A stretch of 64,000 nucleotides of DNA, taken from the NCBI RefSeq assembly GCF_964188315.1, contig NC_135656.1, forward strand, positions 111,662,001-111,726,000. The letters run 5' to 3'. The notes beneath the pieces were generated by a model. That model did no database searches, was not told where the DNA came from, and saw only the letters and a program-made list of their open reading frames with translations. This document shows, one piece after another, positions 17,123-31,063 of this stretch; positions within the stretch are counted from its first letter, which is position 1, and each line of letters opens with the position of its first letter. Source of the stretch: Podarcis muralis (lineage: Eukaryota). A program made the position numbers and the translations under genes.

Positions 17123-20100
17123 TCAACAACGACGGCCTGATGATGTTAAGTACCAGTGCTCGATTGCAGGCAACGGGTCAAACTCTGGCACTGCCACCCC
17201 ATTGACTGCCACCATCAGAAGAGAGTTTGCCACTTCGTTGGAAAGCTTCAACCTCTCGTAAGTCCTTATCAGGTTCATAACAACGCAGCCCCGCTTACAG
17301 CTTCTTGTAGAGATTCGTAAGCATGCAGAAATTGAGGCAAGTTTGCTCAGCAAAGGAAACGCTTGACGCTCCGCAATGGCCTTCCTGCACAGCTCTGAAA
17401 ACAAAAGGTCCCTGGCCACGTTTTTAAGTCCGGCCCATTCATCCAGCAGACTTTCCTCGCTGTAGCTGGGAGGGAGAGCGTACTCAAAATATTTCGCCAT
17501 GGAAAGTACCTCAGCGTCTCCAGAATTGGCAAGGCAGCTCCTGGCAGCAGGCCGGCACATGGTATCAAACACTTCTGTGCTTTTTAAGAGCTGGGGCGAT
17601 GTCTCGCCGTCAAATCTCTGGTGCAGGTATTCCGCCCCGGTCAGGATGATTTTTGCCCGGTCCACTTGAAACCGGAACTCTCCCATCTCGACCACATCCA
17701 AGGAGACCCCTCTGAAAGAACCGTCCTTCACGGCGGCGTTAAACTCTTCCTCCTTCGGTCCCGGCTGTTGGATGAGGTTTTGCAAGGCGAGGTAGGCAGC
17801 TTCCACAGCAGCGTTCACTTGCCCGAGCAAGACGCTTTCTCTCTGGAACACTTCCGAGAGGGGTTTGTAAACCTGAAGGAAGTCAATCAAGAAGTGGGAA
17901 AACTTGACAAAATGGAAGCTCCTCAAGAACGTCAACATGCCTTTCGCCTTCTGCCCCTCGTGGCTGCCAGATTTTGACAGGCGCTCAAGGTGAGCAACCA
18001 AAGCAGGCAAGCTTTCCAGAAGGACGCTTAGAGTTTGCCTCTTGCTCACCACCCACCTGACACTGTTTGACTCCATTAGTTTGGCCATCTTTTGGCCCAG
18101 GCGGGGAGCCACACCATGCAGCTCCCTCAGTCTTTCAGGGGAGGCTTGGAAAAACTTGAACATCGCCCTGATGTGCTTTTCGCAGTCCTTCACAAAGTCA
18201 ACGTCCCTGTAGCAGACGCCGATGGCCGCATACTGCAGCTTGTGGGTGACACAATGGGCCGGGGACAGGCGAGGGATCACCTCTTGGAATTTGGCGACGA
18301 GCGCACTTTTGCAGGCCGCTATGCTGGCTGCGCCGCCTGTGGCAAGGCCCACGACCCACCCGGGTTTCCTAAATGGGATCTGCAGCTCATCCATGGCTGA
18401 AACGGCGGCAGCGAAGCAGGCGTCGGCGGTGTGGCCGGGCAAAGACGCCAAGCAAAGGTATGATTCCTTCACTTCCGCTCTCCTGAGGTAGCGGATGTAA
18501 ATCGCCAGGCAGGGCTGGTCGGACGAATCCGTGAAGCCGTCCAAGAGGAGGCAGGCGCAGGGCGAGCGGCAGATGCTGTCAAGTATCTCCTTCCGCAATG
18601 TGTCCGCGATGCACCTTATGAAGAGAGTGCATGCCACCCTGTTCCTGTACCTGGGGATGGTGGGGGCTCCCATGACTTGCAGGAGGTCCAGCGCTTTCTC
18701 GTAATCGTTCAGAGGCTTCGAGTGGTAAGCGATGTCGTAAGCGGCGCTGAAAAGGTGCTCCATGTTCCTCAGCACGTGGCTGGACATCTTAGTCAAGCGC
18801 TCGGCCGCCGGAGCGCCATCTGGGTCCTCCTTAGCTGTCAGCGCTCGGACGCACAGCTTGTGGGCGTTGCTCTTGTCGTGGTGCTTCAGGGTCTCCACTT
18901 TGAACGGCCGGGTGTATCCCGTTACCAGTTTGGACACCGGGCCATGAGCGGGCGGCTTCTCCTTGCACACCACGCAGTAGAGGGTGGTCTGCCCTTTGTT
19001 GGCCTCCAGCCACGGGAATTGAGAGAACCAAGAGTTTTGGATAGATCTGGGGCCTAGCGTCTTTCGGGCTGCTCCCGCTGCACCAGGTTCCCTTCCACAG
19101 CCCTCTGGATACAGGTTTGGAGGCCACACTTCCATCGGGGGACACAGCGAGAGGGCATAGTCATCCATCGGGTCTTTTTCGTCTGGGTCGTCCACCATTT
19201 CAACCTTGATTATTCCTTTTGGAGAGAAAGTGGAGGGATAATATAGGTTGGTTGGCCGGTGTTTTTAATTAGATCAGGTTCCCAATTAGCTAAGTACTGC
19301 AGGACCCATTTTTCAAAATGAAATAAATAACTATTATTATTATTATTCTATCCATTTAAACATATTTTAGTAACATTACTTTAAAAAGAATCCTAGTTTT
19401 ACAGTCTTTCTATACACTGGTGTTATATATACATTTCTTCAAGAAAACAATCATTTAATATATTACATCAAATCTATAGTTTTGTAAATTAAGTCATTTG
19501 AATTATAGCAGATGAAATTTAAAATCATAACTAAATAACAAAATACCATGCTGTGATGAAAATGAAATATGATGTCATGAAAATGTGATACTGGAATATG
19601 TTTTAGGGTTATAAAGGAATATGTATGCTCATATTCAGGCAAGAAACTTCAATACTTGGCACTTTATGAAAGGATGGCAATTTTGCAGACTCGCTACTCT
19701 TTTGTTTGACGTCATAGTGGCATCCCTGACTATCAGTTTTTCTTTTTTCAGGGCATCAGAGTCAGAGCTTATTATTCCTATTCTTATTCTTATTATTTCT
19801 ATGCCATCCATCTGACTGTTGCCCCAGCAACTCTGGGCAGCTCCCGACACAATAAAACATCAGCCTTTAAAAACTTCCCTGAACCACGGACCCCCTACTT
19901 TTGAAATTTTTGCTATCTCTATGGTAGTTTTTGTTATATGAATGGTGCCACAGTTCCCCTGGGTGGGCTACACAGACCCCCTGTGGTCCATGGACCATCA
20001 ATTGGGAGCCAATGAGTTAGATCATTAATGTGTTAACAACAAAAAACCCAGCTACCAACATAAAGTGGTAACCGACCCCATTGCAACAAATTTTTGCAAG

Positions 20101-29100: not shown

Positions 29101-31063
29101 CAGTGGTTTACGAAAGCTATACATAAAACTATACAATAAGAACATTTTGATAAGAAATCCACTAATTATTATGGCAGATGTGTTCTTAATTTTCTGCATA
29201 AACCTGATGGAATGGGAAAGCTTTGAACAGGTACTTAAAGGTTAAAATGGAAGGTGCTTGCTGAACCTCTACTGGCAGAGTATTCCACCACACAGGGCTT
29301 ATGATACAAAAGGCCTAGTTGCTTGTTGTCAAATGAGCCTCGACAACTTGGGGAACAACCGACGATGCTCTTGCAGATGATCTCAGTGACTGAGGGTTCC
29401 TTGAGATAACCTGGAGCTAAGATGCTCAGTGCTTTGGCTGATTAACAGTCTATGTCCTTTTAAATGTGTGGGTAATGTATGGGACGCGGGTGCCGCTGTG
29501 GGTTAAAGCCTCAGCGCCTAGGACTTGCCGATCGAAAGGTCGCGGTTCGAATCCCCGCGGCGGGGTGCGCTCCCATTGCTCGGTCCCAGCGCCTGCCAAC
29601 CTAGCAGTTCGAAAGCACCCCCGGGTGCAAGTAGATAAATAGGGACCGCTTACTAGCGGGAAGGTAAACGGCGTTTCCGTGTGCTGCGCTGGCTCACCAG
29701 AGCAGCAATGTCACGCTGGCCATGTGACCCGGAAGTGTCTGCGGACAGCGCTGGCCCCTGGCCTATAGAGTGAGATGGGCGCACAACCCCAGAGTCTGTC
29801 AAGACTGGCCCGTACGGGCAGGGGTACCTTTACCTTTACCTTATTGGTTTGGTTTGTTTTCTTCTTGTGTGTTTTTTTCTTACGTACTTTATTCTGAATA
29901 TTTATGTTGTGGATGAAGGGCGATATACAAATTTAATTAATAATAATAAAAAATACACATTTTCTCAAAATATTTGAAGCTGATAGGAATGAAAGGCATA
30001 TCTGCAGAAGGGAGCGGCAAAGTATTATTAATACTGTTTTGCCCTTTAGCAAAACAGCAATATATGAAAAGGCCTGAAGAGACGGGAACAATCAGGTTCC
30101 CCTTCCATTTTTGCTGAAACCAGGAGACATTGTGACCTAGTCACTGCCTCTCAGCCTAGCCTACCTTGTGGGGTTCTTGTGGGGATTAATTGAAGAGGTG
30201 GGGAAAACCATATGCACCACACCTTGAGTTCCTTGGATTAAAAGGTGGGATAGAAATGCAAATACTGTTAGTAAAGAGAAGAGAGAGACCCTTTAGTTTG
30301 ACGCAGCCCAGCTCCTCTCACCTTTTGAAACGACAGGGGCGCAGCATTGATCTATGTTCCCTTCAGGCGCCTAACAGAAATTGCTAATGAATGAAAAGAA
30401 TTTCAGCGGTCCCGGAAGGCAAGCAGTCGACTCTTTCCAAGATTTCTGTCTGCAGATATGAAACCAACAAAACGCCACTGAGCGGCGGAGATGTGGGTGG
30501 GGGACAAGAATGAATGGACCGACAGTCAGGGGGTGATGCGCCCCTGAAACAACCGGAGCTTGGACCAGGCAGGATTTTATCCAAATGAAGTCCTTTCCCC
30601 GTTTTGGAGTCGAGGTGAGATCTTTGCTTTGGGGGTGCCACTACGACACTAGACTGTGCCCGATCCTTCCCCCATATGGATTCGGTCCAATTCCCCCAAA
30701 CAATAAGCCTCTCTCCATCCCATTCTCCGCCGCCGCCCACACCCCACATATTTCTCTCCCCATATTTCTCTCTCTTGCTTAGCACCACCGCACGTCGAGA
30801 AAGACAAAAGGCAGCCCGGGAGCCGACGACGCCACCCCTAAACCGCAAAAAGAAGCCTTACATAAATGAAAAGTGCATTGAACCCGATTCTCCCCTTCAT
30901 TGGGTCTCTGCTTGCCTGCAAAGCTGAAGCCATCAGTGCAGTCCCGCCGCTCCTCGGGGCCGCGCTCTGCTGCCGTCGGGGGCGCATCGGGAGGCTCCCA
31001 GGCAGCGATCCCTCCAGCAAAGGGATCGCCCCTCTTTCCTGAAGCGGCGGCGACCCACTCCAT
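17123..31063 (-). CDS. ZNF862: KRAB-C2H2 zinc finger-hAT transposase-derived protein (ZNF862-like), about 928 aa
   Basis: Phase-consistent model: 31063-30862 (strong Kozak gccATGG), 28782-28700, 27721-27595 (127-nt [22 protein letters not shown]..), 22664-22479 (two C2H2 fingers with HTGEKPYEC linker), 22223-22128 and 19215-17123; total 2787 nt. The last exon (TTF-type finger [15 protein letters not shown]; hAT core LLDGFTD, HCVTH, VRW; ..[10 protein letters not shown]) closely resembles the C-terminal half of human ZNF862 as recalled. Orthology versus paralogy and the two 5' exons are less certain. Confidence 0.8.
20108..20235. mobile_element. Short MITE relic (GGGTGTAGCCAGG..CTTGGCTATGCCC ends)
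   Basis: Imperfect terminal inverted repeats; related sequence at about 57258-57393. Confidence 0.45.
21190..21406 (+). mobile_element. Tc1/mariner MITE family A
   Basis: TIRs and TA TSD. Confidence 0.85.
23040..23284 (-). mobile_element. Tc1/mariner MITE family A
   Basis: Reverse-orientation copy with TA TSD. Confidence 0.85.
23586..24088 (+). mobile_element. Bov-B LINE 3' fragment
   Basis: Encodes [43 protein letters not shown]..; ends in (AAC)n. Confidence 0.92.
24737..25116 (-). mobile_element. Solo LTR (380 bp)
   Basis: TG...CA termini with short inverted ends TGTTGGGATA / TATCCTAACA; perfect 5-bp TSD GGGAG; minus-strand AATAAA at 24942-24947. Confidence 0.85.
25596..26445 (-). mobile_element. 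L2 LINE 3' fragment with an intact ~230-codon ORF2 C-terminus
   Basis: ORF 25742-26509 is L2 RT C-terminus; (AAT)n tail at 25596-25655. Confidence 0.92.
26945..27430 (-). mobile_element. L2 LINE 3' fragment
   Basis: Same family; (AAT)n tail. Confidence 0.88.
28055..28401 (-). mobile_element. L2 LINE 3' fragment
   Basis: Same family; adjacent (AATC)n tract. Confidence 0.88.
28861..29088 (-). mobile_element. Tc1/mariner MITE family A
   Basis: Reverse-orientation copy. Confidence 0.82.
29481..29842 (+). mobile_element. Sauria SINE (same subfamily as 3367-3725)
   Basis: Full length, with ACCTTT tail. Confidence 0.9.

Follow-up and report, generated by a model that had tools for sequence, protein, structure and literature searches.

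A squamate ZNF862-like gene that joins a KRAB box and two C2H2 fingers to a hAT transposase body in Podarcis muralis

Fusions between KRAB zinc-finger genes and transposases have been catalogued by Cosby et al. (10.1101/2020.05.07.082677). Their Supplementary Table 3 lists fusions of KRAB, C2H2 fingers and a transposase (KKOLOD1-3, KTHAPD2/3, KHARBID4 and KMARD3a/b) as well as fusions of C2H2 fingers and hAT (ZNF618 and HATDG5), and gives ZNF862 as 'Mammalia, 180-312 My, mammals + monotremes' (My, million years). It holds no squamate ZNF862-like entry, and the main text names neither ZNF862 nor C2H2. ZNF862 itself was given as a hAT-derived gene with seven introns by Kordis 2011 (PMC3257199), and PMC8856651 links it to human hereditary gingival fibromatosis. 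Here we analysed a 64-kb window of the Podarcis muralis genome (contig NC_135656.1, positions 111,662,001 to 111,726,000); all coordinates below are positions in this window. The interval 17123-31063, which contains zero N, is a single eight-exon gene on the minus strand, the P. muralis representative of a squamate gene that is named 'zinc finger protein 862-like' in RefSeq. It encodes a KRAB domain, two C2H2 fingers and a hAT transposase body, and this body shares its origin with that of mammalian ZNF862, so that the fusion is probably as old as the amniotes.

The gene resembles KKOLOD1-3, KTHAPD2/3, KHARBID4 and KMARD3a/b in its KRAB zinc-finger front, from which some fingers are spliced to a transposase exon, and in its purifying selection; these fusions are proposed sequence-specific repressors. 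However, they carry THAP, Harbinger or mariner parts together with 4-12 fingers, whereas the lizard gene has a full-length hAT part and two fingers and is not in the table. ZNF618 and HATDG5 likewise combine C2H2 fingers with a hAT-derived C-terminal region, but no KRAB is listed for them and they stem from other hAT lineages and ages. With KRAB zinc-finger proteins the lizard gene shares KRAB-A and KRAB-B boxes on separate exons and tandem C2H2 fingers with a TGEKP-type linker. A first-pass annotation of this DNA, made from the sequence alone, had presented the gene as a chimera specific to this locus. This view did not survive, as squamates in general have the design, RefSeq lists it for P. 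muralis itself, and fusions of KRAB, C2H2 fingers and a transposase had already been catalogued by Cosby et al. Being already in RefSeq and of a catalogued class, the gene is a modest variation on a known kind.

Exon boundaries were read from the sequence with inspection of the AG and donor sites, and Pfam searches were run exon by exon. The conserved coding model adds up to 148+83+127+90+186+96+48+2093 = 2871 nt, or 956 amino acids, with exon phases that agree and no stop. Exon 1 (30916..31063, minus strand, as for all exons and residues below) comprises 148 nt from the ATG at 31063 and ends in a GC donor (cag/gcaagc, the slash marking the splice site); it was located by tblastn of the Zootoca and P. 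muralis RefSeq proteins. A long form of 202 nt (30862..31063) uses an alternative in-phase GT donor 54 nt downstream of the GC donor. The GC donor at 30916 is kept in Zootoca, which has an in-frame TGA inside the 54-nt extension. Exon 2 (28700..28782; 83 nt, phase 1-0, AG/GT sites) holds no known domain and matches lacertid RefSeq proteins at 89-100%. The KRAB-A box lies on exon 3 (27595..27721; 127 nt, phase 0-1, acceptor ccag/, donor /gtaaag), which gave a Pfam KRAB match with E=2.6e-22. Its acceptor is a NAGNAG site (ccag/cag, 27721-27724), and because of this the RefSeq isoforms occur in pairs of 955/956, 973/974 and 900/901 amino acids that differ by one Gln. The KRAB-B box is encoded by exon 4 (25451..25540; 90 nt, phase 1-1, AG/GTGAGG sites), which matched Zootoca, Hemicordylus and marsupial KRAB-B by tblastn; the gecko genome encodes it too, and no P. 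muralis RefSeq isoform lacks it.

The two tandem C2H2 fingers follow on exon 5 (22479..22664; 186 nt, phase 1-1, donor /gtaagc; Pfam zf-C2H2 E=6e-13). They are linked by HTGEKPY; there are only two of them, and they lie on an internal rather than a terminal exon. When exon 5 is read unspliced, its frame ends 9 codons beyond the donor. Two linker exons come next, namely exon 6 (22128..22223; 96 nt, phase 1-1), which holds no domain, and exon 7 (21120..21167; 48 nt, phase 1-1, AG/GTGAGT sites), which was matched to Zootoca by tblastn. The finger exon and both linker exons are therefore all symmetric (phase 1-1). Exon 8 (17123..19215; 2093 nt) encodes the whole hAT transposase body in 696 codons followed by a TGA at 17125..17123.

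Six of these exons had been proposed by the first-pass annotation, and all six are real: they were read from the sequence on the minus strand at the proposed coordinates, with AG acceptors and GT donors, agreeing phases and no stop. The KRAB-A box and the tandem C2H2 pair that it had recognised were borne out by the Pfam matches given above. The six-exon model was nevertheless incomplete. It missed the KRAB-B exon (25540..25451) and the 48-nt exon (21167..21120), both of which were found by aligning the Zootoca RefSeq protein (tblastn) and reading the sequence, and it did not include the second in-phase donor of exon 1. The model still read open because both missed exons are in phase 1-1 with AG/GT sites.

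The RefSeq annotation of P. muralis agrees with the eight-exon model. Exon 8 is 100% identical to the P. muralis RefSeq 'zinc finger protein 862-like', and the 956-amino-acid isoform is exactly the eight-exon model, while the 974-amino-acid isoform takes the long exon 1 and the 901-amino-acid isoform begins in exon 2. Every P. muralis RefSeq isoform includes the KRAB-B exon, the finger exon and the 48-nt exon.

We compared four RNA runs with window positions 17000-22900: two transcriptome-size contig sets from different studies, which are presumed to be RNA, and two raw stranded RNA-seq runs. In each of the two studies a contig carries 22578..22479, 22223..22128, 21167..21120 and 19214..19035 in succession, and all three joints read CT..AC, that is GT..AG on the minus strand. 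The joint 19214/21119 was also crossed by two raw stranded RNA-seq reads, the direction of which is consistent with minus-strand RNA. The contigs thus join the C2H2 exon to the 96-nt exon, the 48-nt exon and the hAT exon, and therefore these exons belong to one gene. That the finger and hAT exons would be spliced together had been anticipated from the sequence, and the contigs of both studies agree. The direct 22128>19215 splice that had been predicted was not seen in the four RNA runs over 17000-22900; the RNA shows 22128>21167 and 21120>19215 instead.

When we searched for related proteins by word search, the best matches were the ZNF862-like proteins of Zootoca, Rhineura, Hemicordylus, Tiliqua, Eublepharis, Varanus and Elgaria, with 73-93% identity. 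Pfam matches to both KRAB and C2H2 were obtained in Zootoca, Hemicordylus, Tiliqua and Elgaria, and C2H2 matches in Rhineura. The RefSeq models of seven squamate genera join the finger and hAT exons. In the gecko Eublepharis macularius, the RefSeq ZNF862 model is 5′-truncated (777 amino acids), and KRAB-A, KRAB-B and the fingers are encoded upstream in the genome (positions 7304-10099 of the gecko locus); no neighbour genes were found within 10 kb of this locus. From lacertids to the gecko, the exons are conserved together and their phases agree. The design of KRAB, two C2H2 fingers and hAT is thus general in squamates: lacertids, Rhineura, cordylids, skinks and a gecko all have it, either in annotated proteins or in the genome sequence. 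Among the matches of the word search and the exhaustive protein search there was no orthologue from a snake or an iguanian, despite many annotated genomes; this could be due to lineage loss or to an assembly gap in the region of the major histocompatibility complex (MHC) in which the gene lies.

The ratio of nonsynonymous to synonymous substitution rates (dN/dS) was estimated per exon by the Nei-Gojobori method. Compared with Zootoca, dN/dS was 0.14 for the hAT exon and 0.18 for the finger exon, and KRAB-A showed 0 nonsynonymous and 5 synonymous differences. Compared with the gecko, where synonymous sites are close to saturation, the values were 0.09 for the hAT exon, 0.06 for the finger exon and 0.21 for KRAB-A. 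Exons 1 and 7, with few sites each, appeared unconstrained. These ratios indicate that the hAT, finger and KRAB-A exons are under purifying selection. In addition, the stretches with both C2H2 recognition helices show no difference between the squamate alignment rows that cover them, nor between these rows and the gecko genome. The locus thus has the features of a host-transposase fusion, with host exons and transposase exon on one mRNA and purifying selection on the transposase (dN/dS 0.14 and 0.09).

The transposase body was examined by profile searches and by structure prediction. When the hAT exon was scanned locally with Pfam and NCBIfam, no hAT family was recovered and the only match, to zf-C17orf113 (E=3.4e-4), was sub-threshold; PDB sequences searched with a profile of the family alignment gave KRAB structures only and not Hermes. 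An AlphaFold model built on a 68-sequence family alignment reached a predicted local distance difference test score (pLDDT) of 86.2 and a predicted template modelling score (pTM) of 0.79. When this model was compared with the PDB by Foldseek, the ten best matches were all Hermes transposase, starting from E=1.6e-10, with a probability of 1.00 and over 520-560 columns. The model is predicted to share with Hermes (PDB 4D1Q, 2BW3) the fold of the catalytic core with its helical insertion (target template modelling score ~0.57-0.60). An RNase-H-like catalytic core interrupted by a helical insertion, a hAT feature, is thus present in the lizard protein as modelled. Hermes, on the other hand, is an active hAT transposase, to which the lizard protein is 12-14% identical; the latter lacks the second Asp and the Glu and is encoded by a single-copy host gene with introns upstream.

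Within the body, a BED/TTF-like CCHH zinc finger is encoded at 18830..19018, with its ligands at Cys 18976-18974, Cys 18967-18965, His 18880-18878 and His 18862-18860. All four ligands are invariant across a 14-sequence alignment. The TTF-type finger of the first-pass annotation is therefore present as a CCHH finger, but its only Pfam match is the weak one to zf-C17orf113, below the cut-off. The CxxH and RW motifs are also kept (C321, H324, R386 and W387), each being found in 63-67 of the 68 family members. The C-terminal region of the lizard protein aligns gap-free to the mammalian stretch that matches the Pfam hAT dimerisation model (PF05699).

The putative columns of the catalytic triad were assigned via the family motifs DxxTD, TDGA and CERGFS and by position in the predicted structure, where they fall on strand 1, directly behind strand 4 and at the beginning of a late helix. 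In the family alignment these columns hold D in 67/68, D in 59/68 and E in 57/68 sequences. The first catalytic Asp (D225; GAC at 18539..18541) is kept in the lizard protein and lies on the predicted strand 220-228. The second Asp position is Gly (G293; GGC at 18335..18337), and the Glu position is Lys (K640; AAG at 17294..17296), the motif there being CKRGCV compared to CERGFS in the family. The second column is G in 6/7 squamates, with Varanus alone having D, and D in 7/7 mammals; the third is K in 7/7 squamates and E in 6/7 mammals. A full hAT core had been claimed from the sequence. As a fold it is complete, given the Hermes match, but two of its three catalytic residues are replaced (D, G, K), and on the assigned columns the body is judged to be catalytically dead. 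If the triad assignment is right, the lizard protein cannot cut DNA because of these replacements. The possibility that the locus is an active transposon was rejected, as the triad is lost, the gene is single-copy, the locus is collinear between species and the transposase is under purifying selection.

Next to the squamate proteins, the closest relatives are the mammalian ZNF862 proteins, which are 51-55% identical to the lizard hAT exon over 93-100% of the exon. In an exhaustive search, identity beyond the squamate and mammalian representatives was at most 33% (amphibian genes and a SCAN-hAT paralogue of Hemicordylus). We built a quick maximum-likelihood tree of whole proteins (whole-protein comparisons used RefSeq proteins) and rooted it at the midpoint. 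Squamates (support 100) and mammals (support 100) formed sister clades with a shared branch of 0.74 (support 100), and the order within each clade resembled the species tree. The assignment to ZNF862-type KRAB-hAT genes, already suggested by the first-pass annotation, is supported. Moreover, the hAT exon acceptor of lizard and marsupial falls in the same aligned Gly codon, which is split in phase 1 in both.

Outside these two clades, the nearest hAT bodies are fused to other host fronts, namely SCAN (Hemicordylus), KRAB (Bombina and another) and PR/SET. These different fronts show repeated capture of this hAT lineage.

The lizard and mammalian proteins have in common the KRAB-A and KRAB-B exons upstream of the body, the CCHH finger and the CxxH and RW motifs. 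They differ in the intervening part: in mammals the KRAB-B exon is spliced directly to the hAT exon, whereas in squamates three symmetric exons lie in between. The domain order of mammals (KRAB, finger and partial core, second KRAB, full hAT) is absent in the lizard, which has a single KRAB and a C2H2 pair and no duplicated module. Mammalian ZNF862, in contrast, carries a duplicated module of KRAB, finger and partial core and a C-terminal extension, and it has no C2H2 fingers. The latter had been stated for human ZNF862 in the first-pass annotation and was found again both in precomputed Pfam matches and in a local Pfam scan of an opossum-order protein. Mammalian Pfam matches are to KRAB, the FAM200-ZBED5 RNase-like domain and hAT dimerisation, the last of which is without a match in the lizard. 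The triad differs as well, with D-D-E in 6/7 sampled mammals (armadillo has K) compared to D-G-K in the lizard.

The genes also lie in different places. In the window, a CSNK2B exon (CK_II_beta, E=3e-21) was found at 36639-36854 (minus strand), and open reading frames (ORFs) of GPANK1, with ankyrin and G-patch matches, at 47105-47701 and 48463-48969 (both plus strand). The locus is therefore MHC class III. The Zootoca locus is collinear with that of Podarcis, with CSNK2B annotated upstream, and the lizard gene is single-copy. An MHC-linked position unlike that of the human gene on chr7 had been noted in the first-pass annotation, and it agrees with what we observed: CSNK2B and GPANK1 in the lizard, an SSPO-like neighbour in the marsupial.

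We consider a single capture of amniote age, followed by remodelling and a change of locus, the most probable explanation, with a probability of roughly 0.8. In this explanation, the front of a KRAB zinc-finger gene, consisting of KRAB-A, KRAB-B and a finger exon that keeps only two fingers because a donor directly follows finger 2, would have been fused to a hAT copy. Two short linker exons connect this front by splicing to the single exon that encodes the BED/TTF-like finger, the RNase-H-like core with its helical insertion and the C-terminal hAT region. Lineage-specific remodelling after the amniote-age fusion would then have given squamates the two fingers and mammals the duplicated module of KRAB and finger. 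The finger exon may have been gained in squamates or lost in mammals. The transposon ancestor of the protein dates back at least to the squamates, and probably to the amniotes.

Several observations speak against this explanation. The tree was only a quick one, midpoint-rooted and based on whole proteins. Neither the word search nor the exhaustive search had a bird, turtle or crocodilian orthologue among its matches, and synteny differs, the lizard gene lying between a galectin-like gene and CSNK2B/GPANK1 and marsupial ZNF862 adjoining an SSPO-like gene. Because of this missing orthologue and the different loci, a single amniote origin needs lineage loss as well as relocation of the gene. The marsupial ZNF862 locus, where the intron is 1.2 kb, showed no remnant of the finger exon or the linker exons by tblastn. 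The Pfam hAT dimerisation model itself (PF05699) had no match in the lizard protein. In the KRAB box of every squamate sequence seen, Gly-Gln stands where two Glu would precede the conserved Trp, and E20 and E21 of KRAB are listed as critical by Cosby et al.; KAP1 recruitment is uncertain because of this change. Finally, expression of the gene was low, with few-fold depth in the sampled RNA runs, and the RNA joints cover exons 5-8 only, those upstream of the C2H2 exon resting on the sequence and on RefSeq.

One could go further and suppose that the squamate gene keeps the ancestral state of ZNF862. In the amniote ancestor, a donor gained after finger 2 would then have linked the finger exon to a hAT copy further downstream; the loss of the fingers and the duplication of the module of KRAB and finger would be later changes in mammals. 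We regard this as a tentative possibility, on the doubtful side. If it were true, the ZNF862 fusion would move from 'Mammalia, 180-312 My' to >310 My, and the two genes would form a natural pair of KRAB-transposase regulators, of which the first reads DNA through two systems and has a dead active site, and the second uses a single system and has a triad that seems intact.

Alternatively, squamates and mammals could each have fused the same or a related hAT family to a different KRAB zinc-finger gene, which would make the lizard gene a convergent look-alike. The loci, MHC class III and the SSPO neighbourhood, and the N-terminal designs are indeed different, no bird, turtle or crocodilian orthologue was among the search matches, related hAT bodies were repeatedly captured by SCAN, KRAB and PR/SET fronts, and the catalogue of Cosby et al. 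dates ZNF862 to Mammalia. Nevertheless, we consider independent capture unlikely. In the tree the two clades are sister groups united by a long branch, their identity is 53% compared to at most 33% for all else, and no transposon-like or amphibian sequence falls between them. That lizard and marsupial split the same aligned Gly codon in phase 1 at the hAT acceptor also argues for one capture.

With respect to function, the protein would no longer move DNA. We infer for it the role of a DNA-binding regulator with sequence specificity, most probably a repressor, in which the C2H2 pair is one system for DNA recognition and the finger and body of the transposase are the other. Of the other residues compared in the KRAB box, D, V, L and Y are kept in the lizard and R is changed to K. 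In the tests of Cosby et al., KRAB-transposase fusions acted as sequence-specific repressors, and they can repress reporters via terminal repeats of the cognate transposon.

On the basis of such repression through cognate terminal repeats, the gene could be a KAP1-recruiting repressor aimed at surrounding hAT miniature inverted-repeat transposable elements (MITEs), as the first-pass annotation had suggested. We found no support for this and think it very improbable. The abundant repeat sampled in and near the gene is a tRNA-derived short interspersed element (SINE) without terminal inverted repeats, and not a hAT MITE. Moreover, the KRAB box has Gly-Gln instead of the two critical Glu, and cognate elements should have decayed long ago because the age of the transposase lineage is at least that of squamates. 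The repeat family in question is ~350 bp long and occurs at 29480-29839, 31860-32227, 54755-55107, 56739-57083, 61658-61993 and 6043-6385. Its copies start with a tRNA-like head (GGTTCGAATCC box) and end in ...CCTTTACCTTTAC; inverted-repeat scans of three copies revealed no terminal inverted repeats.

The least probable alternative, in which a small KRAB zinc-finger gene with two fingers is a neighbour of a separate hAT-derived gene or transposon copy behind it, could explain why the unspliced C2H2 exon frame ends 9 codons past the donor and why the hAT exon has its own ATG at 19198, but it was rejected since it is contradicted by the RNA joints, with contigs of two studies and raw reads linking the C2H2 exon to the hAT exon via exons 6 and 7, and since the exons are co-conserved in phase from gecko to lacertids and joined in the RefSeq models of seven squamate genera.

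The introns contain further repeated sequences. ORF fragments (...RRDHITPVL...) at 25742-26509, 27122-27349 and 28144-28416 lie in introns of the gene; such fragments recur at least 8 times across the window and also in the Zootoca locus, and they probably represent the tails of a family of retrotransposons. RNA depth was enormous in 21137-21530 (the intron by exon 7), 20152-20742 and 21728-21924, with a summed contig depth of up to ~119,000 and hundreds of raw reads, and many loose read ends were seen at 21188, 21224 and 21408/21409. These stretches are repeats transcribed from elsewhere in the genome and lie outside the mRNA of this gene.

The probable amniote origin of the ZNF862 fusion is the one new point of this analysis, as the published catalogue dates ZNF862 to mammals only. 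ZNF862, linked to a human disease and dated to mammals, has a close counterpart in squamates, and the fusion is probably as old as the amniotes. The same captured transposase would have been rebuilt differently in the two groups, with two fingers and a lost active site in squamates and with D-D-E and no fingers in mammals. The squamate and mammalian genes therefore offer a comparative system for the contribution of the transposase body to DNA recognition.

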